A DNA stretch of 64,000 nucleotides from Macrostomum lignano (lineage: Eukaryota): positions 1-64,000 of the forward strand of contig NIVC01001542.1 of the NCBI GenBank assembly GCA_002269645.1, written 5' to 3'. Shown here in pieces: positions 7,641 through 33,900 of the stretch. Every line of letters begins with the position of its first letter. The first letter of the stretch is position 1. The position numbers and the translations under genes were made by a program. The notes beneath the pieces are model-generated. The model was not told the origin of the DNA. It did no database searches and saw only the letters and a program-made list of their open reading frames with translations.

Positions 7641-8156
7641 TGGCCTTCATAGTTTGCTGATCGCTTTGTTTCTGGAATTTTCTAATTCATTCATATTGAT
7701 TTCTAATCCATTTTTGCATTCCGCCTTGGCTAACCATTCTAACCATTTTTGAATGAAGCAGAAATCAGAATCCAAAGCTATTTAACTAGCCCACTACTAC
7801 GATCGTAGATGTGAAGTAGATATTTAAAAATGTGTGCTCGTAAGATAGTGTATATCTGATGAAGTTAAAATAAAATAACAAAGTCCATCAGCTTCCTGAT
7901 TAATGACTTATTACGAGAATATTTAATGAAAGTAAGAGTCTCGTATATTTTAGATTCTTGCGCCAACCAAAAACTCTGCCGTTAACTTTAAAGTTTTTTA
8001 ACAAAATGTATTTTTGTTTTCAATATAACTAATGACAGTGGTGCCTTATTGTTTATTTAGAAGATAAATTTTGTCTGGCTTATTTTTAATGCATATAAAA
8101 TCTTACTATAACGTAATAATTTAGTTACTTAGTGAATAGAGTGAAGTGTGAAAAAT

Positions 8157-9483
8157 TTAAGCACCAGAGGTATTCAGAGATTTAAGCGCCGCAGATGTCA
8201 GAGATTTAAGCGCTACAGGTATCAGAGATTTAAGCGCCGCAGATGTCAGAGATTTAAGCGCTACAGGTATCAGAGATTTAAGCGCCACAGGTGTCAGAGA
8301 TTTAAGCGCTACATGTATCAGAGATTTAAGCGCCGCAGATGTCAGAGATTTAAGCGCTACAGGTATCAGAGATTTAAGCGCCGCAGATGTCAGAGATTTA
8401 AGCGCTACAGGTATCAGAGATTTAAGCGCCGCAGATGTCAGAGATTTAAGCGCTACAGGTATCAGAGATTTAAGCGCCACAGGTGTCAGAGATTTAAGCG
8501 CTACAGGTATCAGAGATTTAAGCGCCGCAGATGTCAGAGATTTAAGCGCTACAGGTATCAGAGATTTAAGCGCCGCAGATGTCAGATTTAAGCGCTACAG
8601 GTATTAGATATTTAAGCGCCACAGGTATCAGAGATTTAAGCGCTACAGGTATTAAATATTTAAGCGCCACAGGTATTAGAGATTTAAGCGCCGCAGATGT
8701 CAGAGATTTAAGCGCTACAGGTATCAGAGATTTAAGCGCCACAGGTGTCAGAGATTTAAGCGCTACAGGTATCAGAGATTTAAGCGCCGCAGATGTCAGA
8801 GATTTAAGCGCTACAGGTATCAGAGATTTAAGCGCCGCAGATGTCAGATTTAAGCGCTACAGGTATTAGATATTTAAGCGCCACAGGTATCAGAGATTTA
8901 AGCGCTACAGGTATTAAATATTTAAGCGCCACAGGTATTAGAGATTTAAGCGCCACAGGTATCAGAGATTTAAGCGCCGCAGATATCAGATTTAAGCGCT
9001 ACAGGTATCAGAGATTTAAGCGCCGCAGATGTCAGATTTAAGCGCCACAGGTATCAGAGATTTAAGCGCTACAGGTATCAGATTTAAGCGCTACAGGTAT
9101 TAGATATTTAAGCGCCACAGGTATCAGAGATTTAAGCGCTATACAGGTATCAGAGATTTAAGCGCCACAGGTATCAGAGATTTAAGCGACGCAGATGTCA
9201 GATTTAAGCGCTACAGGTATCAGAGATTTAAGCGCTACAGGTATCAGATTGAAGCGCTACAGGTATTAGATATTTAAGCGCCACAGGTATCAGAGATTTA
9301 AGCGCTACAGGTATCAGATTTAAGCGCTACAGGTATTAGATATTTAAGCGCCACAGGTATCAGAGATTTAAGCGCTACAGGTATCAGAGATTTAAGCGCC
9401 ACAGGTATCAGAGATTTAAGCGACGCAGATGTCAGATTTAAGCGCTACAGGTATCAGAGATTTAAGCGCCGCAGGTATCAGAG
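8157..9483. repeat. 24-bp minisatellite (tcagagatttaagcgc-core) with alternating variants
   Basis: Units ...gctacaggta and ...gccgcagatg alternate as 48-bp dimers; 22-bp deletion variants appear in the distal half. Confidence 0.95.
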
Positions 9484-9553: not shown

Positions 9554-12500
9554 GCCGAATCGAGCTCCGATCGTTTGGCCGCCTTCCAACAGGAAGTGGA
9601 GGCTCTGGTGCGATTCAAAGACGAATACTTTGCCCAGCAACAGGAGCAGCAGCAACGGGGCGGTCGTTCAGCGGCAGTTGAGGCTCGGGTTGAGCAGATC
9701 GCCTCCCGATACGCCGATGTCGGCGCCTCAATCAGCGGCCCGGACAGTCGCTGCGCCCACGCCCTGTCTATGGGCAAACTCTACCACTGCTTGGAGGAAT
9801 TCGACCAGCGAGCCTTGGACAATTTGACTACGGCCGCGAAACTGAAGCCGGACCAGCCGGAGGCCTGGCGCTTGCTCGGCGAAACCTACTGGAAACGGCG
9901 GGACTATCAGTCCGCTTATAACTGCTTCAACAGCGCATTGCAGCACGGCAGGGATAGCGCTGTGCTGCGCAATCTGTCCATGGTGCTGCGAGCTCTGCCG
10001 TTTGCCAGTGCGGCAGATCGGCTGGCTAAGGTTGAGGAGAGTCTGGCCAAGGCTAAGGAGGCCCTGCAGATGGATATTAAGGTGAGGCGCGAGATTCTGT
10101 AACTCCTGTCTGGGCTGTGTGCACCCTGTCACATTGTCACCACAACCGGCGAGAGGCACACATAGCGTGGGGATCAAGGACTACTTAGGACGGGAAAATA
10201 CGTTTCTCGGAAAACTTTAAGAGGCAGGCTTTTCAGAAAGGCAAGACATCGAAAGATGAACTCTGGGTCTGCCACCTTTAAAAAGCAATAACCATTTTTT
10301 GTGCTGAAAATGAAAGCCTTCTATCTTCGTTATCCTTGGCAGTCGTACGCACAGGCTCACATTTACACAGGAGTGTACAGGGGCCCTGACTTTATTTATC
10401 GTTAGGCATGTACACTTCACTTGTGCTTTGGGGGTTGGACCTCGAGGGCGCTAATTATTTAGCCCCAAATGAATGCCACTGCACTTGGAATCGAGCCTGG
10501 GCCGCTGGCTCATCATTGGCTATACGGCTCCCCTTGTAGGTAAAAAAAGGTAAATCTGTAGGTTGGTAAGAATAAGAACCGGATAACAGGTGAATTATAT
10601 AACAGCCCTCTGTCTCACTCACTCGAAACAATTTCCCTGAAATGAGTTACCTCTGAAACAGCAAGGGGTTTGTCTACGTATCGTGCCTTTGATAGTAGTA
10701 TATTCTGCATCTATAGATTTGATTAAATTCTCATTTAATAAATCTACTTGCAATGCCGCAGGACGGGCGCAGCTGGGCGGTGCTTGGCAACGCCTACCTG
10801 AGCTGCTACTTCACCAAGGACCAGTCCAGCACCTCCATGCGCTTGGCCATGTCCGCCTACAGCAACGCTATGAAGGACCCGGTGGCCAGCAGCGACCCGG
10901 ATCTGCACTACAACTCTGCCATGGCGCACGTCTACCTGGATCAGTACGAGCAGGCGCTCAGCGGATTTCGGATGGCCCACAGGCTTGACCCTAGTTGGCC
11001 GCAGGCTCAGGTAATCTCGGATGCGGCAGTGTTGAGATGCTGGGAATAAAAAACATTTCGGAAATAATTGGAAGTGGAAGTAATTGATTGCACCTGCCCT
11101 ACTCGGCCAGATGTGCAACCGGCAGCTCAGCCGCAGCTATTGCGCGGCGCATCCAAGGACGGGGGGGGGTCGTCACACACACCCTCAATTACCCGGCACA
11201 GCTAATGCTGGCACCCATTTTACAACTGGGTGAACTGAAGCAATGCCGTGTTTAAGTGTCGGCAGTGGGTCGGGATTCGAACCCCTGACCTTTCAGTCTT
11301 AATTCGGCACTGTAACCACAAGGCTACACCCCTAATTAATTAGTCTTTAATTCAAAGATTATGGAATAAGAAAAGAATGCCTTTGATGAGGCTATAGGAT
11401 TCTGAAGATCTCAGAAGATCTGTAAGTCGGTATGATGCTGTGTAGTGATGAGGCTGGTGCTATTTGATAAAAACTGGCTCTTATCCTGCAGGAGAAAGTC
11501 ACCCAGCTGCCTCGCATGCTGAGTAGCATCCAGGACATCATCGACAGTCGCGGCCGTTTGAAGCCTCGCGTCTATAAATCCATGATGGAAGGCTTCGCCC
11601 AGCGCCGGGTCAAGGATCTCGGCCCCTACGCTGGTGGCGGCTACTCTGACAGCCGAGGCGAGAGCGTCGCCCTCGCCGAGGTTCGTCTGAGCCAGCTAAA
11701 AGTGGGAGCCAACCCTGAGACTGTGCTGCTGCTGCGAGTGATCGGGCTGCCCCGAGCTGATGACCAGGTAGGTACTTCCGGCGGCTGCTTTTACTCGGTT
11801 TCTTTCGCACTTCCGGTTTTTACTTTAAGTAGCAAATTTATAATTTAGGTTGGTGTTAGAAGTAACAATGTTACACTTCCGGGTTGTATATTTCAGTAGC
11901 TAATTGATACTTCCGGGTTGTATATTTCAGTAGCTAATTGATACTTCCGGGTTGTATATTTCAGTAGCTAATTGATACTTCCGGGTTGTATATTTAAGTA
12001 GTTATTTAATACTTCCGGTTGGTATATTTTAGTAGTTAATTAATACTTCCGGTTGGTATATTTCAGTAGTTAATTAATACTTCCGGTTGGTATATTTCAG
12101 TAGTTAATTAATACTTCCGGTTGGTATATTTTAGTAGTTAATTAATACTTCCGGTTGGTATATTTCAGTAGCTAATTAATACTTCCGGTTGGTATATTTA
12201 AGTAGTTAATTAATACTTCCGGTTGGTATATTTTAGTAGTTAATTAATACTTCCGGTTGGTATATTTCAGTAGTTAATTAATACTTCCGGTTGGTATATT
12301 TTAGTAGTTAATTAATACTTCCGGTTGGTATATTTTAGTAGTTAATTAATACTTCCGGGTTGTATATTTAAGTAGTTATTTAATACTTCCGGTTGGTATA
12401 TTTTAGTAGTTAATAATACTTCCGGTTGGTATATTTCAGTAGTTAATTAATACTTCCGGTTGGTATATTTCAGTAGTTAATTAATACTTCCGGTTGGTAT

Positions 12501-14944: not shown

Positions 14945-15651
14945 GTTTAGAAATCTACGAAGAAGTTAAACTAAGACATAATTTATAGCTACCTACCATT
15001 TGAAGCAGCCGTCAAATTGACTCTTCTCTTCTACTCGTCCATGTTGACAACCCGTTATTGTAGCCAAATATACCCGGTAGATAATAAATAAAAACCATCT
15101 GGAAGCTTTCAGATCCTCAAAATACTCTCTGAGTATTATTTTAGGTATTACTCCTATTAGTATGTCTTTCATTAGGTAAAATTTATTTGTGTCCTACTAA
15201 TTTTTAAATCAAGGACCACTAGAAGTACATCAATCAGGACGCTGCAGTCAAAGATGGTATAATTTTTGGAGGCTGATTTCCGTAAAAAAATGCACTGCGG
15301 AGATTAGAAAAAATCAACTCTATTTTATATAGTTGTGCAGTGAAAGTTTTGTTTTTACATTTTTTATAAGCCCGAAGTTGTTAATACTCACAAGTTGAAT
15401 TACGAGCGTAGTTACATAAAATACACCAGAGCAACATGCTGTTCATGCTAAATTAAAAGAATGCTAATCTTCACTAATCCAGATCAAATGCAATCATTGA
15501 TTTTGTAATGAGCCTTCAAAAGAATTACACGATCTTTGACTGTAGCGTCCTGATTTACTGCTAGTGGTCCTTGATTCAAATCAGAACTTTACCGAAAGCG
15601 AACCCATCCAACCTGCTCTCTTTACAGAAGACTTGCATTTTTTTGAGAAAC

Positions 15652-16920
15652 ATGGACGGTCAAAGCAGCAATGCGACTTCCGCCGGTACAGGACAACTCG
15701 AAGCGGCGTCAACTTTGAGTGAACGTCAGCGAGACCAGATCCAGCATATTAGTCGGTATAGAGATGTGCTTCTTCTAAGACTTGAATCCATGCAGATAAA
15801 CCAGGCTGGCCAGCCGCTCAGTCTTCGGCATTTAAGCAACGTAGTTGACTGGCCAGAGTATTACGTTCGAGTCCAGACTGGCTCTAGTAAAGTAGACGAG
15901 TTGATTGCAGATTTAGATACGTTTTTCGGCGCCAGTCTGGCTCAGCTGAATCAGGTGCGCGATGAGGCCAGACAGAAGCTGGCAAGATTTTTTCCGAGCT
16001 CAGTGGAAGCGGAGCAGCTTGAGTTGCGCATGTTCCAGCGTCTAAGATCTTGTCAGGAGGCCAACGAGTCGAATTTCGAAGAAATCTATCAATTTGCAAT
16101 GGTCGCTCTGTGCTCATTTCTGCACTGGCTGCAGCCGTCGCCTTGGGAGCGTCGGCAGCAACTTAGCAAACGAATGCACTGGCTTCACGAGCAGTACCAG
16201 GACACCATCAAGCAGCGCATTGACGCAGAGTATCGAAGTAATCCTTTCTATGCTCAGACGCTTCAGAGGTTGTGCCTTGTGTTGAAAGCGCCGGATTCTT
16301 TCTTGGAGAAGCGCTCATACTCCGAGGGCATTGTCGGACCGGTTGATCGTCTGGAAGCGTTTCTGCAAAACTTCTCCAATCAGACGGCTGAGCAGCGCCT
16401 TAAAGACCAGCTGATCTGTCGGATGCGGATTTTCCATCGGCAGCACGGAGATTACATCAGAAAGCGCATGGAAACTAGCAGTATTAGCCCGGTCGTCTTG
16501 GACAAGCTTCGTAAAATGCTCGCCGACTTTGAATCACCCGAGTCATTTTTCCTGCATTATAAAGACGATTTGGAAGCCATGCAAAAATTGCTGGATCGAT
16601 CCGAGTCCACTCTTGAAGCCGTATTGCCGGACAAATTGCATCCGAGCTTGCGCAAAGTCCGCACAGAGGCTCGCGCGAAATTGGCGCAATTGTATCGGAG
16701 TCCCGCACTTGGTGACTACTATGTAGACCTGCTGCTGAAGCTGTACCCGAAACCAGAGAAGCTGGAGACTCACCTGTACAACCGGTGTCGAAGGGTTACA
16801 TCGGACAGTGCCGAGCTGGTTTTATACGAGCGATACATAAAGAATCTACTGATTGTGCTCAACGGTCGCTGGCATGAGAGCCTGTTAAGACCGTTTCTAA
16901 TCGAAGAACGCGAGCTTTAG
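15652..16920 (+). CDS. MED15-derived shuffled protein (middle-domain/KIX/middle/middle/KIX), ~422 aa, single coding exon
   Basis: 449-codon ORF with ATG at 15652 after acceptor ctctttacag. Segments LSERQRDQIQHI, ERRQQLSKRMHWLHEQY and EQRLKDQLICRMRIFHRQH resemble NERQQVQVQRMRQLHQQH of the 26203 gene; RTEARAKLAQLYRSPALG matches the KIX repeat RVETRRKLANLYRSPAPG. Confidence 0.8.
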   Translation: MDGQSSNATSAGTGQLEAASTLSERQRDQIQHISRYRDVLLLRLESMQINQAGQPLSLRHLSNVVDWPEYYVRVQTGSSKVDELIADLDTFFGASLAQLNQVRDEARQKLARFFPSSVEAEQLELRMFQRLRSCQEANESNFEEIYQFAMVALCSFLHWLQPSPWERRQQLSKRMHWLHEQYQDTIKQRIDAEYRSNPFYAQTLQRLCLVLKAPDSFLEKRSYSEGIVGPVDRLEAFLQNFSNQTAEQRLKDQLICRMRIFHRQHGDYIRKRMETSSISPVVLDKLRKMLADFESPESFFLHYKDDLEAMQKLLDRSESTLEAVLPDKLHPSLRKVRTEARAKLAQLYRSPALGDYYVDLLLKLYPKPEKLETHLYNRCRRVTSDSAELVLYERYIKNLLIVLNGRWHESLLRPFLIEEREL

Positions 16921-17011
16921 TATCGTAGCTACGCTCGTAGTTTGCGCGACTTTTTGGTGATTGGGTTTCTTAGGCCTAATGGAGAGATGTGCAACAGCTC
17001 AGGCGTAGGTT

Positions 17012-17237
17012 TAGTGCGACGCATCTGAAGGCTGTTTACGGCTGTTCAGTCAAAGGACCGGGATAGGGGGTCGCCGCACACACCCTCAATTACCTCAGCT
17101 AATGCTGCTGGCACCCATTTTACAGCTGGTTGAACAATGCAGAGTTAAGTGTCATGCTTGTTTCAAGTCGGTCAAGAATCGAACCCCCGACTTTTTAGTC
17201 GTGAGTCCGACGTTCTAACCACTAGGCTACAACCCCC
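17012..17237 (-). mobile_element. SINE family 1 copy
   Basis: Minus strand GGGGGTTGTAGCCTAGTGGTTAG...GGGGGTTCGATTC head, CCAGCTGTAAAATGGGTGCCAGC body and shared 3' body. Confidence 0.8.
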
Positions 17238-17830
17238 AATTGATAATATATATATAATACCTGAACACTATTCGAATACATGTATATTGAAATCTACTGA
17301 TCTTGTAGGTCATTGTTATAAAATAAGATTTTATCTTGATTCTGGGATTTTGATCGTTTTGCACGCCGATAGCTGAACACGTCTGCGAAGTGTTATTTGT
17401 GCTCACCACAAAACGTACTCGTTGTCGAAGTCTGCTAAAACTGGCAATTGAAGTTACGCAAAGAACCCAGCTTCTAATCTGCGGGGTCTATCAGTGTGCA
17501 TTTCTACTGTAGGTGTAAAACTCTGTTGCCTTTGATTGCTTTTATTGCATTCATTTATCTGCTTTTATTCGAAACTAAGTACGAAATTTTGACTGGCGCT
17601 CAGACTTTATAAATCAGTAAAGCAAAGTTTTTTCAGTTTCCGCATTTCAACACTGCCGCTCAAGTTTAACGTTTGTATGCAATTTTGTAGTTTTCAGAAA
17701 ATACAAAAATGACTAAACTTGTTTGCTCTTATCTTTGATAATTTTTCTTGTTTTTCTTTAAATTGATTTCAAACCAACATACTAGGATAGAAAAATGGAA
17801 GTGCTAGACTGCTCTACATTTCTTAAATAG
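17012..17830 (+). repeat. Segmental duplicate A (3' flank of the 15652 gene)
   Basis: SINE plus ~600 bp colinear with 21360-22240 (e.g. tattcgaat, gatct.gtaggtcattgtt.taaaata, ttcatttatctgcttttatt, gctcaagtttaac). Confidence 0.85.
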
Positions 17831-18017
17831 AAAGATACAGTCAGTTAATAAAATTATTATTTTAAAACTTCGAAAGCGAACTATACCAACGACGTTTTTA
17901 GCTATATGAAAATATAAAAAAATTGTTATGTAATCCTGGGTCCAAACCTAGGAATATATAGATCGTATATTCACTACATAGGCCACTATATTTACTACTT
18001 GGGCGCGTCAATAGAGT

Positions 18018-18948
18018 CCTAGGGGTGTTTGGGGTTAGGTCGGGGTTCGTGGTCGAGATTAGGGGTCGGGGTTCGGGGTCCCGATGAATGTTCGGGATGG
18101 GGTTCGGGGTTCCCGATAAATGTTCGGGATCGGGGTTCGGGACGGGATTTTGGACCGGGATTTCGGGGTTTTCGGGGTTTCGCAACTTTTCTGAATTCCC
18201 ATAGAACTACGAAAAAATCCTTATGAATTAGCTTTTTTCGTTTTTATCGTGATCGCTTAAGGCTTACGACGCTTAAATCCAAAGCTTTATTTAATGCTTT
18301 TCTGTGGTCGTAAGTTTCGTTAATAACATTTATAAATACGCGCTCTTTCAAATACTATATTGCAAAACTCGTACGATCGTACTTAAATAACTTTTGCATA
18401 AATATTGCCTTCTATTCTGAATTACTCTTAAATACACTGAAATATATTGGCCAAACAGGCTTCTTGCCTGAGCCAAACTTACTACTACTACTGTGCACGT
18501 GAATATTCCAATACATACTTTACATGACTGACTTAGCTTTTGACACGTGCCGTGCCGTCCATAAACTGCGATGATTATCAAGTCAAAAATATTTTTTCAA
18601 CTTATGGTATAGTATTAGTACTATTAGTACTATTATTTTTCTATAATTAAGTTTATATGTTTTTAAGGTATTGTTTCTTAGAAAAAGATTTAGAATCTTA
18701 AGAATTTTAAGAATCATAGAAATGTTTGAATTTATAGACTTATTCTTCAATAGAGGGTCATATCTCTATTAAGTAACAGGTTTATAAAATAAAATCCCCC
18801 AATAATGTCCCCAGGTCCTAGATAGATGATCCGATGAGGTTATCGGGGTCGGGATTAGGGTTCAGGACGGGGTTCGGGGTTCCCGATAAATGTTCGGGAT
18901 CGGGGTTAACCCGGAACCCCGAAAAAAACGCCGTCCCGAACATCCCTA
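18018..18948. mobile_element. Probable hAT-like non-autonomous element with GGGGTTCGGG subterminal repeats
   Basis: Termini taggggtgtttggg and cccgaacatcccta are imperfect TIRs; cggggttcggggttcccgataaatgttcgggatcgggg occurs near both ends. No clean TSD found. Confidence 0.5.
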
Positions 18949-19069
18949 CAATAGACCCATGTATTTCTTGAAAATTTTAGCGACCACCGTCTACTTAGAT
19001 ATAGTTTAAGTTCAGTAGTTTGAGCGATAAGTGCGTACATTATTGTGCTATAATTTTCCAATCCACATG

Positions 19070-19250
19070 TACTCAGCAACATTGAAAATTCGCCACTCTA
19101 TGCAACACCAGTGAGCAATTTCTCTTGGACTGTTGTGAAATAAAAGATACGAGAAAACTAATCGGGGTAGCTTTAATCCGTCCGACAAGTTGCGTCACTA
19201 GCAAAGAATTGAGAGACTTTACCTGCACTCTCAAAAGTTTTCGATTTTTC
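19070..19250 (-). mobile_element. Partial copy of the ACTCAGCAACAT MITE
   Basis: Reverse-complement homology to 30243-30530 (cgtatct.ttatttca, gagagactttacctgcactctcaaaag). Confidence 0.7.
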
Positions 19251-20170
19251 GTTATTCTTTTACGCCTAAAAACCATTAAAATGGCACGACTCAGCTCATT
19301 GGTTTTATGATTATATTTTATCATATTAGCTGACTGTGTAACAGAGATGATAAAATAGATTCAAAAAACCAAAGGTTCAAGCTGTGCCATGCATTTTTAA
19401 TGACTTTTAGATACAGGAAATGCACGTAAAATCGAAAAACTATTTAGAATCCTAATTTTCTGAGAGAAAGCTTTATAAATATCAATAGAGCTATAACAAA
19501 GGCACAACATATCAAAATATAAACATTGGGTCTGCCTCCTATCGAAAGCAAAAAAAAATTTGTGTTCAAAAATAAAGACTTCCTTTTTTCGTAGGGTATT
19601 TTTCGGTGAACAGTGGCCTTCAAAACGTTTTTAATAGATTTCGAGTGTTGCGTCCTTCTACTTTAGTATGGTCTACTTAACATGGTTGTTGCAGTCTCAC
19701 GCAGAAACTGCGCGAGTTCAAACCCAATTGCGTCATTCCAAAGAAGCCTCTATGTTCCTTTCGCTCCTCGACACTCAAAATATAGATTTTTTGGACTAAA
19801 CTTGTACACACGAAGCCTTGAATGCCCTAGATATGTGCAAGTTTAGTCTATAAAAATCTATGAGAATTATTTTGAGTTTCGCTTCCTGATGAGCTAAAGG
19901 CTTCCTTAGCTTGCTTTTCAAGTTTTCGTTAATATAAGTCCAATTTTCGTAACTTTTTTGTCAAACCCTGCTTGCTAGTGTCATTGTGAGCAGAATGACA
20001 CATCATTTGTGTACATAGGTTACTCGGGCTCCACTTTATGAGCTCAAGTTGACAGGCCCTTTGGTTAAAGTAGTTCAGAAGCTGGATCCATTTATGCTAA
20101 TTCATATCGAAAGTTATCAAATTAAGTTTAAAAACCATCTTCATGCGCTACCGCGGCTTCAGAGAGTAAA

Positions 20171-21249
20171 ATGGATAACCAAAACCGTGCCCTACGATAC
20201 GTCATTGTGCCGCCACCGCAGCAGCTGCGTGCTGAGACTCGATGCAAGCTGGCTAATCTGTACCGCAGCCCTGCACCTGGAAACCAGGTAGCTCAGCTGC
20301 TGGACCGCTATCCACCGCTGAACAACTTGAAGATTCCATTTTCAGGCATTGTCAGGCTCAGCAGCGGAGTGGTGGCGTCAGCTTTGATCAGCACCAGTAC
20401 CTGAGCCTTGTGTCCAAGGTGGAAGACGCGCTGACGGGTCGCCTGTCGCATCAGCGACAGCAGCTGCGTGCTGAGACACGACGCAAATTGGCTAATCTGT
20501 ACCGCAGCCCCGCACAGGGACACCATGTAACCGAGCTGCTGAACCGCTGTCCCACCGCTGAACAGCTAGAAGATTGCCTTTTCAGGTATTGTCATTCTCG
20601 CCAACAAAATGGTGGTGTCAGCTTTGATAAGCAGAAGTACCTGCACGCTGTGTCCACTATGGAAGGCGTACTGACCGGTCGCCTGCCGCTTAAGCCACAA
20701 CAGCTGCAGCAGATGCGTGTTGAGACTCGGCGCAAATTTGCTAATCTGTACCGCAGCCCTGCACCTGGAAATCTGGTAGCCGATCTGCTGAGACAATATC
20801 CTACTGTTGAGCAGCTGGAGGATTTGGCTTTCAGGCGTAGTCAGGTGCAACAGCAGAGAAGTCGCGCCAGCTTTGATCAGCAGTACCTGAGCATTGTGTC
20901 CAAGCTGGAAGACTTACTGACAGGTCGCCTGCCGCCGGCGCAAGAGCAAAAGCTGGAGCAGATGCTGCAGCAACAGCAGCAGCGGGAGCAGCAGCTGCGT
21001 GTTGAGACTCGACGCAAGCTGGCTAATCTGTACCGCAGCCCTACACCTGGAAACCTGGTAGCCCAGCTGCTGAGCCGCTATCCCACCGCTGAACAACTTG
21101 AAGATTTCGTTTTCAGGCGTAGTCAGGCGCACCAGCGGAGTGGTGGCGCCAGCTTTGACCAGCAGTACCTGAGCCTTGTGTCCAACCTGGAAGGCATACT
21201 GACGGGTCGCATGCTAAGCCTGCTTCCATTCGATGAACGCGAGATTTAA
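20171..21249 (+). CDS. Tetra-KIX protein derived from the MED15 N-terminus (~359 aa if one missing C at ~20312 is restored); possible pseudogene or assembly error
   Basis: Four ~75-aa repeats QQLR.ETRRKLANLYRSP.PG...YPT.EQLED..FR......SFDQQYLS.VS.LE..LTGR. Repeat 1 reads tatccaccgct where repeats 3-4 and the 26203 gene read tatcc[ct]ac; adding one C joins ORFs 20171-20404 and 20410-21249. Confidence 0.8.
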
Positions 21250-21359
21250 TATCGCATCTAGTTCGTGCCACATGTAACTAATTGTTTGTCCGATATATAA
21301 GCATTATTTAGTGTAATAATAAGTAATAATTTACTACAACTGGCCTAATAGGAAAACCC

Positions 21360-22240
21360 ACTATGGCGTATCGGAAAGCTGCGTACGGCTGTTCGGTCAA
21401 AAGACTGGAGTTGCCACACGTTCCAAGTAGGTCGAGAAACGAACCCCCCCTACCTTTTAGTCGTGCTCCGATGCTCTAACCACTGGTTTTAATAGAACCC
21501 CCAATTTGTTATATATGAAGGACCTGAATATTATTCGAATGCATATTTGAATCTAGTGATCTCGTAGGTCATTGTTTTAAAATATGATTTTAGTCGTATT
21601 GCACGCTAGTTGCTAAACGCGTCTGCCCAAAGTGTTATGTATGCTGACCAAAAAATGTACTCGTTGCCGTATTTATCCCTGCCTGCCGAAGCCTGCTGAA
21701 ACAGGCAATTGAAATTGCGCAAAGAACCCAAAGTAGCTACTATCTAAAACAGTAGCAACTTGCGCCCATATGCGGTCTATCAATGTGCATTTTTACTAAT
21801 GGTGTAAAACCCGTTAAGAACGTTACCATGGCAAGAATCGCTAAAGAGTCATTGTAAACAACTCTCTAGTGAGTCTAGCGACTCTGGTGCAACTATTATG
21901 ACTTTTTAACGACTCATGCGACGGAGAGGCGACTGTTGCGTCACAAGCGCGTCACGTGAGTTGCAGAATCGTGAAACAGTCGTTCTATTGTATTCATTTA
22001 TCTGCTTTTATTAAGTACGAAACTGGCTGGCGCTCCGAATTTTTAAATCAGTGACGCAAAACTGTCGCAGTCGGTAGTTTTTTTCAGTTTGCGCATTTCA
22101 ACAATTAACTACTGCTCAAGTTTAACAACTTTTGTATGCAATTTTGCCGTTTTATCCAGAAAGTAGATACGAAAAGGACTGAATTTGTTTGTTCCATCTT
22201 TGGTAATTTTATTGGTCTTTTCTTAATTTATTTCAAACCA
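21360..22240 (+). repeat. Segmental duplicate B (3' flank of tetra-KIX gene) with internally deleted SINE1 copy at 21360-21503
   Basis: Colinear with 17012-17830, with an extra insertion at ~21810-21985. Confidence 0.85.
21810..21985 (-). mobile_element. Fragment of the GAGTC/GACTC-rich element
   Basis: cccgttaagaacg...gaatcgct...gtcattg.aaacaact.tcta.tga.tc.agcgactct matches the reverse complement of 44250-44368; absent from the paralogous position in duplicate A. Confidence 0.7.
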
Positions 22241-23319
22241 ACAGGAAAACACTACGAGACTGACTTGAAGCCAAAAGCTACGTTATAATTCTCGACTCTT
22301 ATTTTCGTTACCTCTTATACTTTTACGTTGACCATACACAATATTTCTATGGCTAACTGTGCCAGAATCATTTGAAGCGTGCATTCTTCACTTTGGTTGG
22401 TAAAGTTGACTTTTAGCGACACAAATGGACACCTAATGCCAAACGAGCGTAAATCAAGAACAGCTGGCAACAGACCTCGGCAATCACACTAAGAGAGCCA
22501 ACCAGCTAGGGTTCCTCACTGCCGCAAAATCTATAGGCAGTAGCACAAACACGTGCTGGACTATTGACACCCCTGTACTGACTCACTGGGGCGGAGCGGG
22601 GGTAGTGTGGAAAGGCGCGGTTGGAGGATTTCAGCTGCGGGGTAAGAGCCAACAAATGAGCCTTGGTTTTAAAAATGCAATAAAATGCTTCTGTTTAACT
22701 TACTACTGAACTGAAAGTAGCTTACACGCAAATGTGCTGAGTGGCTCATCTAGTTATTCTAGTATCTGGGTTTTTTGTCAGTTGAATGCACGCTTTATTT
22801 GATTCTGGCACAATTATTGCCGGATGGTTAATGTTTTGTCTATGGGCTTGCCAATGTCCAACAAGCATCATAGCTGAGACGCTGACATTCCAGCGTTACT
22901 CCACAGCCCACAGATGGTTGCGAGTAGGCAAGAGCTGTCAGCCTTGCTACATTAAGCAAACGTATCTCGGATTAAATTCAAGGCGCTTAAGCACAAATAG
23001 GCTGCAAAAAGCTATATTAAATACTTAATTATTTATAGGGTACAAGCTGTTGAAACCCGCGGATTTTGAACCCGGGGAATTTCAATCCCTGGAACTATTT
23101 TTGCATGTACTCGTATTCTAAAATCTGAGGTCAAACTCAAACAAAAACTCGTTAATATATAGTTAGGTTAGAATTAAACATAAAATAGAGTACATTTGTG
23201 AAAAATTAGGATTTGAGGCAAACATTTATATTGTTGGCTGGGGTGCTGCGAACAGGCAAACTCTGGCCTCTGCCTCTCCTTATGTCCCTTGGATTCTTAG
23301 AAACTTCGACCTTCTCTTC

Positions 23320-23621
23320 TGTTTCCTCTCCTCTCTCTTGTCTCTGTCTCTTCTCTCTCTCTCTCTCTCTCTCTTCTATCCCCTATTCTCTCGTCTATTC
23401 TCTCTTCCTTCTATTTTTTTATCCCTCCTCTCCTCCCTCCTCTCTACTCTCTCCTCTCTCCTCTCATCTCTTCTCTTCTTTCCTCTCTCCTCTCTCCTCT
23501 CTTCTATTGTCTCTTCCCTCACCTCTCTTCTCTCTTGTCTTTGCTCTCTTATCTATCTCTTCTTTTATCTTTTCTCTCTTCTCTCTTCTCATTCTTTCTG
23601 CATGTTTTCTCCTCTCTCTTT

Positions 23622-23698
<77 letters not shown>

Positions 23699-24416
23699 CT
23701 CTCTGCTCTCTCCTGTCCCATATCTCTTTCTCCTCTAATCTCTCCCCTGTTTCCTCTCCTCTCTCATCCTTTCTCCTCTTTCCCCTGTCCTCTCGGTTTT
23801 CTCTCCTCCCCTCCTCTCTCCTCACTCACTTCTCTCTCCCTTTGTCTCACCTCTCATCTCTTATTTCTATCCTTTTTTTCTTTTCACTCTCCCATCTCTC
23901 GTCTGTTCACTCTCGTCTCTGGTCTCTCATCCCCCTCTCTCATCTGCCATCTTTACTCACTTATACTCGTATGTTTTCTCACCTCTCTTATCTGTACTCT
24001 TCTCTTTCCCCTCTTTTGACTCCTCTCTTTCCTTTCTCCTTTTTCCCTTCTCTTCTCTTCCCTCTTCTATTCTCTCCCTCTCTTGTCTTCTCTCTTCTTT
24101 CTTCACTCTCCTCTCTCCTCTCATATATCGCGTTCACTCTCATCTTTGCTCTCTACCCCCTCTCTCTTCTGTCATCTTTACTCTCCACTCTCCTGTGTAC
24201 TCTTCTCTTTCCCATCTACTGAATCCTCTCTTCTTACTCCTCTTCTCTTCCCTCTTCTATACTCTCTCCCCTCTATTCTCTTCTCTTGTCTCTTTGCACT
24301 CTGCTCTCTCTTCCTTCATCTCTCATCTCTACTCTCTCATCTCCACAATCTCATCTTTCCTCTCTCCTCTTCTTCCCTTTACTCTATCATTTCTCCTTTC
24401 TCCTCTCTTCTTTCTC

Positions 24417-24478
<62 letters not shown>

Positions 24479-24790
24479 TCTTATCTCCTCTCTTCTCACT
24501 CCTCTCTCCCTCTCTCTCCCCTCCTATCTCCTCTCTGTTCTCTATTCTCTATTCTCTTCTCACTCTTCTCTACTCTCCTCTCTCATCGATCCTCTGTCTC
24601 ATCTCTCCCCTCTTCTCTCTTCCTCTTCTCACCTCTACTCTTTCCTCTCCCTCCTGTCTCCCCTCCTCTCGCTTCCTCCTCCCATATTCTCTGCTCTCTC
24701 CTCGTCCTCACCCCACTCGTCTCTCCTGTTATCTTATATTTTTTCTCTTACCCCCCTCTCGCCCTTTCTCTCTTTCTAATAGTCTATTCC
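23320..24790. repeat. CT-rich polypyrimidine low-complexity tract with (CT)n cores
   Basis: Almost purine-free top strand; pure (CT)n at ~23625-23695 and ~24418-24475. Confidence 0.95.
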
Positions 24791-25599
24791 TTTTCTTTTT
24801 CACTCTCATCTGGCCCGCAGCCATGTGCCCATGACTCCATGAGCTGGATTCTTTATCTGGCCTTTGAGTTAAAAATCTACCGATCCCTGCTTCGAAAGCC
24901 AGTTTGTGGGATGTAGTACTATCATGGTTATCATTTCTCATGCTTTAATCACGTCACCTTTCTGGCCAATTAGCAGCCCTGAGAGGAATTTGTGTATCTC
25001 CAGCTCCACCACCACAGTCTGCACTCTGCAGCAGTCTAACAACCAAGGAAATGCGCATTTCTTAGGAGTCATTTAAATTTTAAAGTTACCCTATGCGAAA
25101 CTTTATGTTAAAAGCTTCATGGTGTAACTAATTTAGTAGGTTTGCATTGTAATAAGTTATTCATTAATTTTTCGCTATTTTTACAAACCATCCCGCATCG
25201 CCTTGATTTGCCTGTTTGCCATTCACTGTTAAACTGCTGCAGACTTGTCTATACAGAGGACAGTGGATTGAATCTCTCGCTGAAACTGTCTCTCCTCTCC
25301 ACGCCTCTCCACTCGCGGGGGTGCAGAGAAGGCTATTAAAAGTTATTCCAAAACACTGTACGTTGCCATGTACATTCAGCCCTATCGCCTGACCCTTCGT
25401 CTGGGCTGGGGCAATGAGTGAGTGAGTGGCACAAACAACAGAAAAAGCAGACAAACTTCACATGCTTACAGTTTCCGTCCTGATTGAGATACAGAGTTGA
25501 AACTTTACATTTAGATAGAGAATGAGTCAATGAAGAATTGTGTCAAGTTTAAAGTCAATCGCTTTACGTGGAGCAAACTTATGGCAGCTGAAAGTTAGT

Positions 25600-26062
25600 C
25601 AATTTTGAAACCCTTTTACACATCTGGGCCCAGATCGGTATCGGGAAAGAGAGGCAGGCGGGCGGAGGTTGGGGTGGTTGCTACGCTGAAAAAAACAGCC
25701 TAACTTTAAAAGTGCACAGCGGCTTTCAGGATTAACTTTGAGATTTGAAATTTTACACGATTGTGACAAAATAGTTGAAAATTGCCTGTGTCAAATTTGA
25801 AGAGAATCGGTAGAAGTGGAGCGGCGCTATGGAGGATTTAGTGAAAAAATTGCGCATTTTGAGCAGTTTTTTGCACTTTTAGGTAGGAAGACTTGAGTCT
25901 AGGAAATTAAAAGGTAGCCTAAGACATTCTCCGTAGTAAGTTTAGGGTGGGTGTAAAGTTTGGTGTAATTTGGTTGAGCGGTTTGGGAGTCCATAGCGAT
26001 CAAAATTGTCCACACACAGACAGACACACAGACAGAGTTTTGATTTTTATAGGTAGAGAATA
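25600..26062 (+). mobile_element. Helitron/Helentron-like non-autonomous element (DINE-1/Lep1-like 3' end)
   Basis: caaatttgaagagaatcgg and aagtttggtgtaatttggttgagcggtttgggag followed by an ACAG/ACAC microsatellite and ttttataggtagag, the layout recalled for these elements. Confidence 0.5.
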
Positions 26063-26202
26063 AAATACTTTTGTAAACCTAATTTGTAGTGTTCCGTAAA
26101 CTCAATCTCATTTCATATAAATTCATACCGTAAGCTGTAAAATAAAGTTTTGAAAAATGAAATCACCATCGTTATCTTTCTGAGCTACCGGCTTCAGAAA
26201 AA

Positions 26203-28916
26203 ATGGAGCCGAACCAAAACTATGGCCAACGATACCCCATCATGCAGCAACAACAGCTGCAGCAGCTGCGTGTTGAGACTCGACGCAAGCTGGCTAATCT
26301 GTACCGCAGCCCTGCACCTGGAAACCAGGTAGCCCAGCTGCTAAACCGTTATCCCACCGCTGATCAACTGGAGGATCACGTTTTCAGGCGTTGTCAGGCT
26401 CACCAGCAAGGTGGTGGCGTCAGCTTTGACCAGCAGTACCTGAGCATTGTGTCCAAGCTGGAGGACGCACTGACAGGTCGCCTGCCGCAGCCGCAACAGC
26501 CGCAGCAGATGATGCAGCAGCAGCAGCCGCCGCCTACTCAAGTGATGCAACAGCAATTGCAGCAGCAGCAGCAGCAGATGATGCAACAGCAGCCTCCGCC
26601 GCAACCTCAGCCTCAGGTGATTCGGCCTCAAATGCCGACAGATCCGCTGGTGTCGCTTTCAAACATGGTCGGCGGCGGCCCGGTTGGCGTCAGCAACATC
26701 GTTGTCGGTGGTGCCCGGATGGGGCAGCAGAGTGTGCCGTTGCAGCCTCGCATGGGGACCAGGCCTGTTCCGCAGCAGCAGCAGCAGCCGCCTCCCAACC
26801 AGCTTCCACCATTGAATGAGCGTCAGCAGGTTCAAGTGCAGCGCATGCGGCAGCTCCACCAGCAGCACAGCGAGACGGTCAGAGCCCGGATGGAAAATTC
26901 GCACGGCAATGCGGCCAATTTTGAGAAGCTGCGCCAGATTTGCAACATTCTCGAGACGCCAGAAAATTTTGTACGCAACCAGCGGGATCCGGATAAAATT
27001 GACAACACAATCAGGCAGTTGGAGAGCATTCTGCGGCCCAATGCGCCTCACGCTCAGGCACTGCAGCAGCAGCAGCAGCAGCAGCAGCACATGCTACAAC
27101 AACAGAGACTTCAGCAGCAGCAGCAGCAGCAAATGCAACAGCAGCAACTGCAGCACCAGCAGCTACAGCAGCAGCAACAACTCCAGCAACAGCAGCAGCA
27201 GCAACTGCAACAACAGCAATTGCAGCAGCAGCAATTGCAACAACTGCAGCAGCAACAGCAATTTCAGCAGCAGAAATTGCAACAGCAGCAGATGATGTCG
27301 CAGATGCAGCAACAACAACAGCAGCAGCAGCAATCGCCAATGCCCATGTCCAGTGCAGCTCCTGACAGCGTCGCTGCTTCGTCGCATGACATTCCTCCGG
27401 CGCCTCGTCGACTTGGTGAAACACTTCTTAAAGTACGTTAAAGTACGCCAACCAATCACCTCTTAGTTGACTCTATAAATTCGCTGTCAAGGTTCACCTT
27501 TAATACAAAAGAGTTCGGCCTCCAATACCTTTTTTTAGAGCAAAACATCATCAACTTGGTGTTTTTAAAGCCGTTCCCTATCTGTCCGTTGCCCAACGAT
27601 TCAAAATCACTAACAAGTTTTCTCCAGCCAACGATTGAAAGAAGCAACCAGAATCCATGGAACATTCTGTCACGATAGATTGCATCCGCCGTCAGTTGCG
27701 TCCCCACCGGAGTGGAGAGGGGGGCATGTCCCCCGGCCCCAGTAAAAGCTGTGGGGGGGGGACATGCCAGTGCTTTGTCCCACCCGCCTCACCTTGTAAC
27801 CCGCTACGGAAATCAATCATTTCTCCTTTGGGTGCCAAAATGTAGCGCCTTTGGCGCCAAAAAGAGTGCCTGCGGCGCCAAAATGGGTGTCTGCATGCGG
27901 TGCCAAAATAAGTGCCTGTCTGCGGCGCCAAAATGAGTGCCTGTCTGCAGCGCCAAAATGAGTGCCCGTCTGCGGCGCCGAAATGATTGCTAGAAACACC
28001 GATTCCTAAAAATGTAGGAACTCAGTCATGTAGAATTCTTGGCTTTGTCCCCCTCCCTACTAAGAAGTCCATTGGCGGCGCCCCTGTCTGCCGTCACAAG
28101 TAAAGATTTTTACCAACAAAATCATCTCTTCCACTCCTCCAGGAAATCGAATCTGTTCTCAAAAGTCCCGTCTGCGATTCCGTCTGGTCTCGCTTCGCCT
28201 CTGAGGTCCGTTCGGCGAATCAGGGCATTGTCCCGCCTCGTGACACTCTGTTCATCCCCGTCTCCGTTGACTCGGCAGCTGTTGGCGCCTCCGACGCGCC
28301 GCCGGTGACTCCCGCGCCGGCTCCGGATCAGCCGTTGCGCTCCGAGCTCGCCGACCTGCCGCCCTACTGGCGCGTCCGAGTCCTGACCAGCTCGGCCGGC
28401 CCTGTCGATCCGGACAGCAGCAAAGACGACGCCGCCGACAATCAGGAAGACGAGTCGGTGGATGCTGCCGACGCTTCTAAAGTTGAGGGCAGCGACGCGG
28501 TAACCTCTAGACGGGTTCGTCTGCGCGCCGTCTACACGAACCGGCACTTGATGCCCGACGGCGCCGCGCCGGAGCTGCTGATCACCCTGGCGCCCGGCTA
28601 CCCGACTGTCCGGTCCGCCACCGCGCGACTTCTGCCGCCGCGCCTATCGGCAGCTGATAGCGCCGACAATGGCAGCGACAAGAGCAGCAACTGCAGTCGG
28701 AGCGCCGAGCTGACCGCGGACGCCGCCGAACTGCGCCGGCTGATCCAGACCGAGTGGCGGTCGGCCTACGTGGAGTACAAGCGGGTCTATCGGGACAGGA
28801 ACAGCCTCACGGGAGTGCTGGACGCCTACCACAAAGCCCTGCTAGTGGCCTACGATAGCTGGGCCCCCGGCAGTGAGTTCAGCCTGGCTCAGGTGCGAGC
28901 CTTTATGCGGCGCTGA
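26203..28916 (+). CDS. MED15: Mediator subunit 15 (MED15/ARC105) orthologue, ~667 aa; exons 26203-27432, 28143-28916
   Basis: N-terminal KIX-like LEDHVF...QQYLSIVSKL (human MESHVF...DEYLSLVARL), polyQ tracts, middle domain FEKLRQICNILETP (LSKMKSLLDILTDP). The phase-0 splice gives TLLK|EIESVLKSPVCDSVWSRF (PLLDAVLANIRSPVFNHSLYRTF). C-terminal LRSELADLPPYWRVRV...PELLITLAPGYP...SLTGVLDAY matches LQGEVARLDPKFLVNL...PPLELSVPADYP...SVTALLNTW. Confidence 0.85.
27693..28086. mobile_element. hAT-type MITE in the MED15 intron
   Basis: Imperfect TIR cagttgcgtcccca / tggcggcgcccctg; 8-bp TSD tccgccgt vs tctgccgt; internal ~24-bp repeats gcggcgccaaaatgagtgcctgtct. Confidence 0.7.
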
Positions 28917-30939: not shown

Positions 30940-33900
30940 TCACTGCTGCTGGCAAGATGGTCCGGTTTCCTCATCCTCTTCCCCCTGCGGCGACCGGGCT
31001 CTGCTACCCATTCGCTCATCGTCCGTGCCCCGGGCGTCGGATTCTTCCTCGCCAGCTTCCGCTACCGAACGCAGGTAGTTCGATGGGTTCAACATCGAAC
31101 TGCTGAGCTCCATGAGCGCTCTGGCTTCGGCCGGGCTGCAATTTTACAGTTCATTTGTTATTAGCTTGCAACTCGTACGCATTTGTCAATGAGGCTTTTC
31201 ATGTGCGTGCAACAAAATGAAAGCCAGCTTACATCTCCGGCACTTCCGTAAGGCTGCTTCCCACGCGTTCATCAGCGTTCGCCTGTATAGCTTCCTGCTG
31301 GCACTGGCGCGGTATGGAATGTTCGCACAGCTCCATGTCAATGTCGACGCCTACTTCGTTGGGCCTGGAATAATAGTTGAAATTAAGGTTTCCACGTTTT
31401 ATGTGCGACAAAATGCTAGTTCTTCACATGTCTACCTGTAGGTGATAAAAATCATTGTCAAAATACCTCTCTCCTGTGGCAGCCGGCAGCTGAACTCCCA
31501 GCAGTCTCTCGACCTCCTGACGCACCTCAGCGCTCGCCCAGACGGCCAGCTCTCCCAGCCGGTCTCTACTGCTGCCTTCGCCGATTTCCGCCTTCTCAGC
31601 CAGCAGCTGGACGCAGTCCAGGTTGTCGCGGTGCACCGCGATCATCAGAGGAGTCGCACCGCTTCTGTCCTCAGCATCGAATCGAGCTCCGTGTTGCGAG
31701 AGGGCATCGAGGATGTCAGATCGACCAGCGATGGCTGCCAGGTGAGCTGCGGTTGATCCTTGCTGGTTGGGCTTGCTTGGGTCGCACTGACCGCTGATCA
31801 GCAAGAAGTCCGCGATGTCTTTGAAGCCCTGACGGCAGGCGTACATCAGTCCCGTGTTGCCCTGGTCATCTGGTTCGTCCAAGGGGATTTCTCTATCGGC
31901 AGCGAATTTGACAATTTCCAACTGGCCTTTCTTTTCCGAACCGATGCAAGCCAAGTGGACAATGCTCCTCTGCTTTTTGTTCTTATGGTTCAAGTCGCAA
32001 CTGAACTCAACTAGCAGTTTCATGGCGTCAATGTTGCCATTGATTGCGCAGTCAGACAGTGGTGTGTCGCCATCGCTATCAGCGATATCTAGCAGTGCGC
32101 CTTTCTCTTTGAGCATCGACATGATGTGACGAAGATCTTTTGCGGCAGCTGCTTGCATGGGTGTGTTGCCGTGCTTGTTGACTGTATTGACGAAGTCGCC
32201 TCTGCCCAAATATCGCTTAACCAAGTGAAAGCTTCCTGACGACACGGCAACTCTTAAAGGAACGTCTCCGGTTTCAGGATCAACAGCGTCCATGTTGGCA
32301 CCTCGCTTTTCCACCCAGTCCACCATATGCTGGTTTCCTAGCGCCAGTGCCTGGTGCACGATGCACTCGGGGAGACTGCTTGTCTGAGAAGCATTCGGGA
32401 GTCTGGAAGACTGCTTACACTTGTACAAAAAGTTTGCAATTTTTTCATGTCCATTCAGCACTGCACATTGAATTGGGATGAATCCGGATACATTGCTTTC
32501 TAAAAACATCGCCAACACTGCTTCTGACTCTGGGTCCCAGATGTGCTGCAGGACGTGCAGGTTGCCATGAATGGCTGCAAAGTGAGCACAGTTCATGCCG
32601 TCTTTACTTTTGGTAGCTTCAGAGAACCCCTTCTGCTCAAGAAACTTGAACACCTCCAGGTTTCCCTTGATCGCTGCCAGGTGTAGAGGTGAGCGGGTCT
32701 CTGGTTCGGCAGTTTCTGGTTGACAGGAGCTTGGACAGTTGTCGCAGACCCACTTCACCAGCGCCAGCTTGTTTTCGATTGTAGCGACGTGCAAAACGGA
32801 ATGTTGCTTGTTGTTTCTGAGGTCCGTGCGGCATTGGAGTTGGAGCAGCACTCTCGCCATGTCCAGCCTGCCTCTCATGATGGCCAAATGAAGCGCTGTG
32901 TCTCCGTAGTTGTCTTTATGATCAATTATGTCTTTACATATAAACAAATATTTCGGAGCCCGCAAAGCTTCTAGCACTCTTATATCTCCCAATAGAATAG
33001 CATGCTGCAACAGAGTCTTTCCATTCTCCACTTTCTTGCCATCGAAGCCGTGGCTTAACAAGAAATCCAGATGATTCAAGTCTCTTCTCTTGAAAACCGT
33101 GCTTAACGACAGATGTCGGATCACAGCTTGGGCATCAAAGCTTGCATTTTGGCTTTTTAGCAAATTAACTACTTTATCGTCGTTCAGGCTGAGGGCGAGT
33201 GAGTATGGACTCAGCCCATTCTTGTTGACGATATTGACGTCAGCGCCTTCGTCAATCAACAGCTGAACGGCTTTAGCCTTTCCTTTTCTAACGGCAGAAA
33301 ATATTGGCGTTTCCCCGTCGCAGTCCTTTCTATTGATTGTCTCGGCAGCTCGAGCCAGGATTATTTTCATTACTTGCTTGCTTCCATCGAGGCATGCTAA
33401 ATGAAGGGCCGTTTTACCTGAGTTGTTTACCTCGTTGGCATCTGCTCCCGCCTCTAGCAAGTTATTCAGTTGCTCAATTAAAGCTTTCTTGCCAACGCAA
33501 TCTGTCAGCTGCAAGCCCTTCTTAACTAGGGCGTCTGGAAGAGCTCGTGTCTTTTCGATCATCTTCAATAACCCCGGCTTCATTGACTCAGGCCCTTGGT
33601 CCACTTGCTGCTTTAAAGTCTCAATCTGCTCTTCAGTCTGCGCTTTGAGATCTTGCATCTTGTCAAGGGCGCTTGAGCAGGATTTTCGACACAAAATATG
33701 CAGCACAGTGTCACCATCTTTATTCTAAGCCGCTATTTTAATTCCCTTGCCTAGAAGTATGGGAATAAGATTTAAGTGGGATTTCTTAGCTGCAATGTGC
33801 AAGGCGTTATCTCCACTAAGGGTTTTGTAGTTAATATTCAAATTCTTCTGAAGCAGATATTTCAGAACTTTCTTGTGCCCATTCGAGCACGCGATGGTAA

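Follow-up and report, generated by a model that had tools for sequence, protein, structure and literature searches.

The 64,000-nucleotide stretch of contig NIVC01001542.1 analysed here (the window) bears eukaryotic marks, namely GT-AG introns, microsatellites and repeats resembling short interspersed elements (SINEs). Between 15.6 and 28.9 kb it holds a cluster of three genes, here called A, B and C, all on the + strand. We lean towards the view that these are fast-evolving tandem paralogues derived from MED15, and that A and B are built from shuffled copies of two modules, K and M. K is a repeat of ~75-80 amino acids (aa) with the motif R.E.R.KLA.LYRSP…QLE…F…Y, present once in C, four times in B and twice in A. 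M is a helical segment of ~80 aa, of which C has one copy and A has three. The two modules were compared with each other by hhalign and show no detectable relationship (P = 0.08). The preliminary description of this DNA had proposed three co-oriented genes that share modules, and this is borne out by the open reading frames (ORFs), by module alignments and by tblastn searches within the window. The cluster is laid out as follows:

15652-16920, + strand: gene A, an intact ORF with the modules in the order M1-K1-M2-M3-K2, followed by a 13-aa tail
20171-21249, + strand: gene B, an ATG, four K units (K×4) and a tail, with a frameshift of one nucleotide (nt) in K1
26203-27432, + strand: gene C exon 1, comprising K, a P/Q-rich linker, M and a polyglutamine (polyQ) tract
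27433-28142, + strand: gene C intron, GT...AG, 710 nt
28143-28916, + strand: gene C exon 2, encoding the unique C-terminal region

Three paralogous genes lie inside 13.3 kb, although this counts as a gain in copy number of a Mediator tail subunit only if the MED15 origin is true. The K module of gene C shares 68-79% protein identity with the K units of gene B (tblastn E-values of 1e-14 to 1e-35), and 39% and 33% with K2 and K1 of gene A, respectively. Identity between the M module of gene C and the three M modules of gene A is 26-30%, with within-window tblastn E-values of 1e-5 to 6e-3. Mis-assembly was considered as a source of the copies, and is ruled out by nucleotide differences of 12-40% and by the unlike flanks. 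When the C-terminal ~260 aa of gene C were searched against the window by tblastn, no counterpart was found elsewhere, A and B included. Two earlier proposals are upheld by this result: that the C-terminal region is confined to gene C, and that A and B have lost the putative anchor it contains.

The spliced product of gene C (26203-27432 joined to 28143-28916) is 667 aa long, with ...GETLLK joined to EIESVLKSPV... at the exon junction. Exon 1 has a single consensus donor, AAA|GTACGT at 27433, and the acceptor, tctcttccactcctccag|GAA, is preceded by a clean pyrimidine tract. This is the only intron of the gene, and the first exon spans 410 codons. Within the intron, at 27825-27990, there is a 25-nt tandem repeat of the GCGCCAAAATGAGTGCCTG type in about five copies. 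The exons of gene C contain the following elements:

26251-26490, + strand: K, single copy
26812-27042, + strand: M, single copy
27049-27336, + strand: polyQ tract (aa 281-385, 67% Q)
28143-28226, + strand: hairpin-like stretch of exon 2 (motif match)
28332-28388, + strand: LQGE-like motif of exon 2 (motif match)
28389-28508, + strand: acidic insert of exon 2
28509-28616, + strand: core of exon 2 (motif match, not significant)
28725-28862, + strand: terminal helix region of exon 2 (motif match and hhalign P = 0.021)

The P/Q-rich linker covers aa 97-203 (32% Q), so that gene C has a Q-rich linker between K and the C-terminal half, as MED15 does. A GCA-type repeat was detected at 27063-27332 by Tandem Repeats Finder (TRF). 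Alignment to MED15 places the start of exon 2 inside the first hairpin helix (GETLLK|EIESVLKSPV versus QPLLDAVLANIRSPV), and exon 2 would therefore hold all of the anchor elements.

Gene A is a single intact ORF of 422 aa, without polyQ and without the C-terminal anchor region. Its coding sequence contains no consensus splice donor. The parts of gene A are:

15715-15936, + strand: M1 (aa 22-95), tblastn against the M module of gene C at E = 1e-4 to 6e-3
15937-16137, + strand: K1 (aa 96-162), a short form
16141-16383, + strand: M2 (aa 164-244), tblastn E = 1e-3
16384-16632, + strand: M3 (aa 245-327), tblastn E = 1e-5
16639-16878, + strand: K2 (aa 330-409), tblastn against the K module of gene C at E = 1.9e-9
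16879-17779, + strand: tail codons, stop and 3' flank, homologous to those of gene B and holding a SINE-like repeat

The short K1 lacks the 14-aa segment that separates helix 1 from helix 2. At the composition of gene A, the chance of 422 open codons is ~1e-9. Because these codons have stayed open despite only ~30% identity to the modules of gene C, the sequence argues that the frame of gene A is preserved by selection. Directly upstream of the gene, at 15203-15278 and 15507-15580, lies a ~75-nt inverted repeat (83% complementary), which may be a hairpin or an element like a miniature inverted-repeat transposable element (MITE).

Gene B consists mainly of a tandem array with a 249-nt period (TRF), in which the K units stand head-to-tail:

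20210-20451, + strand: K1
20452-20691, + strand: K2
20701-20937, + strand: K3
20983-21219, + strand: K4
21209-22243, + strand: tail and 3' flank, homologous to those of gene A and unlike those of gene C

One base is absent from K1 of gene B (TATCC[C]ACC, 20314-20316), and the ATG-started frame therefore stops at 20404, which cuts that ORF to 77 aa, while the remainder is open in another frame. Beyond the frameshift there are 330 codons without a stop, in units that diverge by up to ~28% in nucleotides. A neutral simulation at 6-18% change per site gave four stop-free units with P = 0.09 to 0.002. The ratio of nonsynonymous to synonymous change (dN/dS) between units is 0.41-1.0, and synonymous differences are seen in 13 of the 38 columns that are invariant in amino acid. 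The coding sequence of gene B contains no consensus splice donor, and no canonical poly(A) signal is present within 800 nt downstream of either A or B. A frame test based on relative synonymous codon usage (RSCU) gave no discriminating signal in this genome.

The stretch GCT AAT CTG TAC CGC AGC CCT GCA, which encodes ANLYRSPA, is near-invariant in DNA across the five close K copies (26251-26490 and 20210-21219). Only two codon changes are seen, a synonymous CCC in K2 of gene B and ACA (A to T) in K4 of gene B, and adjoining codons are more variable. Gene conversion is one possible cause of this invariance, and a constraint acting beyond the protein is another. The S-P of this segment is a possible site of proline-directed phosphorylation.

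The relationships among the three genes differ between their 5' and 3' ends. The last ~13 codons are common to A and B (…LLRPFLIEEREL* and …LLPFDEREI*), as is a 3' flank of ~860 nt including a SINE-like insert (60-74% identity; blastn of 16880-17779 versus 21209-22243), which is unlike that of C. B and C share the start codon, the first residues and a leader of ~30-38 nt at 81.5% identity, and the K units of B are 80-87% identical in DNA to the K module of C. As its 5' end and K units match C while its tail and 3' flank match A, gene B is, by this sequence comparison, a younger chimera, with a 5' end recently copied from C and amplified four-fold, and with a tail and 3' end from an A-like copy. 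Gene A would be much older, since its modules are far more diverged. The SINE-like dispersed repeat is found at 16994-17240, 21367-21419, 53646-53779 and 58625-58693, and genes A and B carry copies at corresponding positions of their 3' flanks. Its end resembles a minus-strand tRNA (…GGTTCGATTC…), but neither ARAGORN nor Rfam, both run on the window, called anything for it.

The identity of these modules was assessed with standard searches, and their outcomes weigh against a MED15 origin. Pfam hmmscan of all window ORFs at E ≤ 1 returned no KIX, KIX_2 or Med15 family, and exon 2 of gene C matched none of these families at E ≤ 10, the Med15 profiles (PF09606, PF21538, PF21539) included. The KIX profiles PF02172 and PF16987 did not match K. 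Among 177,635 distinct PDB sequences, searched at E ≤ 10, a K profile found no KIX domain. In PDB searches at the same threshold, neither an M profile nor the C-terminus of gene C found a KIX or MED15 chain. The sole PDB match of the K profile, by its motif YRSPAPGNQVAQLLNR, was to helix 5 of the ETV6 SAM/PNT domain (YRSPHSGDVLYELLQH; E = 0.44), and is most likely due to chance. An exhaustive HMMER (phmmer) search with exon 2 against 1.84 billion representative proteins likewise returned no MED15; its only matches were two bacterial repeat proteins, which are spurious by their sequences. A word-indexed search of 5.8 billion clustered proteins returned nothing for the C-terminus of gene C or for the K profile, self included, and a metagenome scan with the K alignment gave 77 pattern matches, of which 0 were confirmed. 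Look-ups of the exact products of gene A, of exon 1 of gene C and of an ankyrin ORF found no such entry. In a pairwise BLASTP comparison of gene C with a human MED15 sequence that is 94-98% identical to database MED15s, we see E-values of ~1.5-1.9. As far as these sequence searches can tell, the family is without detectable relatives in public data.

Predicted structures gave a similar picture. The AlphaFold model of the K module of gene C (predicted local distance difference test, pLDDT, 89.6) has helices at 2-19, 25-33, 37-53 and 59-75, that is, three helices and a short one where KIX has its G2 3-10 helix (KIX layout per PMC3936767). The AlphaFold2 model of K1 of gene A (pLDDT 82) has helices at 4-21, 25-46 and 50-68. 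The K models are all-helical with the helix order of KIX, α1-(G2)-α2-α3, a likeness of order that was read from the models. Foldseek searches of the PDB with these two confident models gave six matches each, all at E ≥ 2.5 (best E-values of 2.5 and 5.6), with no KIX among them, although Foldseek is weak on small helical bundles. The MED15 reading of the preliminary description thus found no support in the profile and fold tests that it had itself named, Pfam matching and the combination of AlphaFold and Foldseek. Some care is needed with such negatives. According to KIXBASE, InterPro, Pfam and Prosite detected KIX in only 36, 2 and 0, respectively, of 597 MED15-domain proteins, and KIX identity across kingdoms is only 26-28% (PMC5668377). 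Med15 is also markedly divergent between and within phyla (PMC2475620).

More directed comparisons were performed using a MED15 profile, for which 20 diverse real MED15s were aligned, from vertebrates to molluscs, annelids, spiders and insects. The bait used to fetch real MED15s was a human MED15 sequence, and the matches, 94-98% identical to it, carry PF09606, PF21538 and PF21539. KIX, middle and C-terminal blocks were cut from the alignment and compared with the modules of the window. In hhalign, K against the KIX block gave P = 0.0019 with a probability of 14.5%; only α2-α3 align, pairing LEDHVF…QYLSIVSKL with mEnHvF…eYLsLVARL. M against the middle block gave P = 0.0033, in a shifted register, and the two C-termini gave P = 0.021, with DRNSLTGVLDAY paired with DKHSVTALLNTW in the terminal helix. 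The six non-matching block pairs gave P = 0.044-0.72. In hmmsearch, the scores of the matching blocks of gene C were reached by 0 of 1000 shuffles for K against KIX, 7 of 1000 for M and 40 of 1000 for the C-terminus. For gene A, the score of M3 against the hidden Markov model (HMM) of the MED15 middle block was equalled by 9 of 1000 shuffles, and that of K2 in hmmsearch by 35 of 1000. K2 is also the best match within gene A of the MED15 KIX α2 matrix, with a score reached by 2 of 300 shuffles, and K1 is the second best.

Ungapped matrices of 13 MED15 motifs were scanned along gene C. Top matches fell at aa 55 (KIX α2), 78 (KIX α3), 240 (M helix 2), 405 (hairpin helix 1), 474 (LQGE), 557 (core) and 629 (last helix), of which the core match is not significant. 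The longest increasing run comprises 8 of the 13 motifs (P = 0.01). The six motifs with the lowest p-values (aa 55, 78, 240, 405, 474 and 629) stand exactly in MED15 order, which has a chance of 1/720, and each lies in the matching slot of the architecture: the N-terminal domain, between the polyQ tracts, just past the second polyQ, or the extreme C-terminus. As a control, the reversed sequence of gene C gave a Fisher statistic of 47, compared to 60 for the real gene. Because the reversed sequence also scores high, residue shuffles overstate significance for helical sequence, and the scan was therefore repeated with 32 decoys of a natural-like kind, which comprised ankyrin segments, reversed MED15s and the reversed sequences of genes A and C. 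No decoy reached the gene C score for KIX α2 (28.8, against 18.8 for the best decoy) or for the last helix (0/32 in both cases). The score was reached by 1/32 for M helix 2, 1/32 for hairpin helix 1, 2/32 for the LQGE motif and 4/32 for KIX α3. For the seven motifs whose top match was off-site, 8/32 to 23/32 decoys did so.

Overall, the failed profile and fold tests do not refute homology, because matching blocks outscore non-matching blocks, shuffles and decoys. On the other side stand the hhalign probabilities, which are low (14.5% at best), and the reversed-sequence control, which means that the case rests on a few short motifs and their order. Taking these together with the negative searches, we consider it probable from the sequence that gene C is a homologue of MED15, albeit a very divergent one. 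That it is the only MED15 of the organism has, in our estimate, an even chance. We set this lower because the neighbouring TTC5 gene is easily recognised and because ordinary MED15s from invertebrates keep 43-54% identity with the human protein across M and the C-terminal region. The TTC5 match lies at 9575-10102 (+ strand), a 175-aa exon with tetratricopeptide repeats (TPR) that matches mammalian TTC5 over aa 4-169 (PDB 6t59, E = 6e-23). The same two observations favour a rival that we regard as a serious possibility, though somewhat less likely than not: gene C may be a diverged MED15 paralogue, such as an intron-poor duplicate or a retrocopy, with a canonical MED15 elsewhere and A-B-C forming a satellite family. 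Its single intron, its 410-codon first exon and its having been missed by all standard searches fit such an origin. Against it, all MED15 regions are kept in order in gene C, anchor motifs included, and marked divergence of Med15 is documented between and within phyla (PMC2475620). The earlier label of gene C as a full-length MED15 was too strong: gene C is far more divergent than TTC5 and may be a diverged paralogue. We think it improbable that the cluster is an orphan Q-rich helical family unrelated to MED15, whose matches arose by chance or by convergence of amphipathic helices. Such an origin would account for the negative curated-profile, PDB and fold searches, the lack of homologues in both protein sets searched (5.8 billion clustered, 1.84 billion representative), the poor BLASTP match to human MED15 and the score of reversed gene C against MED15 motifs, well above shuffles. 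However, it does not sit well with matching blocks that consistently outscore non-matching ones, with a KIX α2 score that exceeds that of the top natural-like decoy, out of 32, by 10 units, or with six best motifs that are collinear with MED15 and in matching architectural slots.

A further question is whether A and B are genes at all. Gene B, and less likely gene A, could be a decaying pseudogene left by unequal crossing-over, with no role. We consider this rather unlikely, but its frameshift and unit dN/dS values of up to 1.0 weigh against a functional gene B. In addition, its promoter is not obviously copied, as B shares only ~30-38 nt upstream with C, and both A and B lack a canonical poly(A) signal in the 800 nt downstream. 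By contrast, the frameshift amounts to a single C dropped from a run of three (CCC), as is typical of long-read assembly errors; 330 stop-free codons persist after up to ~28% unit divergence (neutral P 0.002-0.09); and the conserved residues of gene B carry synonymous changes. Gene A is fully open though very old. The sequence of gene B is compatible with either a recent pseudogene or an assembly artefact, and the gene may be broken. Alternatively, A and B might be 5' exons of one long MED15 unit, each spliced to the exon at 28143. The co-orientation of A, B and C upstream of a single C-terminal exon and the acceptor-like sequences just upstream of the three ATGs would suit this arrangement, but there is no consensus donor inside A or B, where exon 1 of gene C has exactly one, and both A and B close with a conserved tail that includes the stop, followed by a 3' flank that is likewise conserved. 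We regard this arrangement as very improbable indeed.

If the cluster is derived from MED15, as we favour, gene C would keep the MED15 layout of a KIX-like K, a Q-rich linker, a middle M, a second polyQ and a C-terminal anchor, and would serve as a MED15-type tail subunit. A and B would have arisen by duplication and shuffling of K and M only, and since only these modules are present, they are without any known means of entering Mediator. In mouse, the N-terminal ~530 residues of MED15, including KIX, are flexible and activator-facing, whereas the C-terminal part forms a hairpin inserted between MED27 and MED29, residues 654-674 lie along MED14, and residues 678-787 fold into a domain that sits between MED23 and MED24 (PMC7921410). 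Were A and B expressed in the nucleus, they would amount to multivalent copies of MED15's ligand-binding modules, free of Mediator. Such proteins would vie with the MED15 bound in Mediator for ligands of K and M, or bridge those ligands elsewhere. The most plausible ligands would be the activation domains of transcription factors. M would correspond to human MED15 ~527-597, and the mammalian equivalent lies just upstream of the part resolved in tail structures and has no assigned partner (PMC7921410). That no organism offers an assigned partner for M counts against the proposed mechanism: the earlier view of M as an activator-binding module is not established, and activator binding by M is hypothetical because no partner has been found for the equivalent region.

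In its fullest form the proposal is that a lineage, probably animal, has made anchor-less multivalent proteins (M-K-M-M-K and K×4) that compete or adapt off Mediator, beside a fast-evolving MED15. Judged on sequence, this is an unlikely conjunction. If it were true, it would imply an arms-race-like or regulatory diversification of the docking surface of the Mediator tail, MED15 being a main docking subunit through which activators recruit Mediator. Given a MED15 origin and expression of A and B, these would be natural anchor-less arrays of MED15 helical modules. They would provide a ready system in which to ask what the middle region M binds, and would show whether free docking modules tune or antagonise contacts between activators and Mediator, as proposed for free Tlo/Med2. 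Gene C would show how far a MED15-type gene can drift beyond all curated profiles. If the MED15 origin is false, the cluster is another Q-rich orphan family confined to one lineage, and its interest is modest.

Several other features of the window were recorded. The well-conserved TTC5 orthologue adjoins the very divergent cluster. Between genes B and C, at 23200-24900, there is a CT-rich low-complexity tract of ~1.7 kb with strong negative GC and AT skew, which yields long spurious S/L-rich ORFs in all three + frames. The remaining features are:

31424-36583, - strand: giant single-exon ankyrin-repeat gene of ~1700 aa, with one in-frame stop at 33725-33727 that leaves two ORFs in the same frame, 18 nt apart
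46281-51446, - strand: paralogue of the preceding gene, also single-exon and ~1700 aa, with a near-identical C-terminal end
42617-43303, - strand: fragment copy of the ankyrin-repeat gene
5376-6305, + strand: repeat-encoded ORF, PGQPPYQ
8148-8591, + strand: repeat-encoded ORF, RFKRYRYQ
54466-55152, + strand: repeat-encoded ORF, (LTEERVK)n
56396-57349, - strand: repeat-encoded ORF, (HPSI)n

The (LTEERVK)n and (HPSI)n ORFs lie within a 4-kb stretch with a GC skew of +0.36 to +0.43. The four repeat-encoded ORFs are probably minisatellites and not genes, except perhaps the P/Q-rich one.

Finally, the cluster can be compared with known systems. Gene C resembles MED15/ARC105/Gal11 in having an N-terminal helical domain, a Q-rich linker, a helical middle and a C-terminal region in the same order, and its short matches to motifs of KIX α2-α3, M helix 2, the MED27/MED29 hairpin, LQGE and the last helix are collinear. 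It differs from MED15 in its acidic and serine-rich C-terminal inserts, in a 14-aa extra helix in K and in having one intron, and it has no Pfam Med15/KIX, PDB or Foldseek match. In Candida glabrata (Gal11A/B) and in plants and oomycetes, the Med15 paralogues are, as far as is known, full-length subunits, each able to enter Mediator. As in the cluster, these systems have several markedly different paralogues per genome (PMC2475620; PMC3936767), with three to five in the plant and oomycete families (PMC2475620). Unlike them, the three copies here stand in tandem, and two of them are anchor-less, being built of amplified modules only.

A further parallel, to gene B (K×4) and partly to gene A, is offered by the standalone and tandem KIX proteins of plants, in which KIX-type domains occur apart from the remainder of MED15 or CBP (PMC5668377; PMC3936767); as many as six KIX domains in tandem are recorded in Brassica oleracea by KIXBASE (PMC5668377). 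In contrast to the plant proteins, K was missed by all KIX profile and fold searches, and it bears no sequence relationship to them. In gene A, in addition, K is interspersed with M, for which the plant proteins offer no described parallel. Two of the latter, KIX8 and KIX9, bridge PEAPOD to TOPLESS. They are components of the plant KIX-PPD repressor complex (PMC7160150, 10.1101/2020.02.07.938977).

Our literature search turned up no account of MED15-derived genes in a tandem cluster that has K and M arrays interleaved. However, the earlier statement that no such family had been described goes too far, as precedents exist in the MED15 paralogue families, the plant tandem-KIX proteins and the pool of free Tlo. 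In function, the nearest known parallel is the Med2/TLO family of Candida albicans, where a gene for a tail subunit has likewise been amplified in one lineage. The amplified subunit there forms a Mediator-free pool that is proposed to compete for the targets of DNA-bound transcription factors (PMC5065183). Tlo proteins keep the Mediator-interaction domain and carry an activation domain, whereas A and B are without the anchor and carry putative ligand-binding modules; and where the TLO genes are subtelomeric, the cluster described here comprises three copies in tandem.

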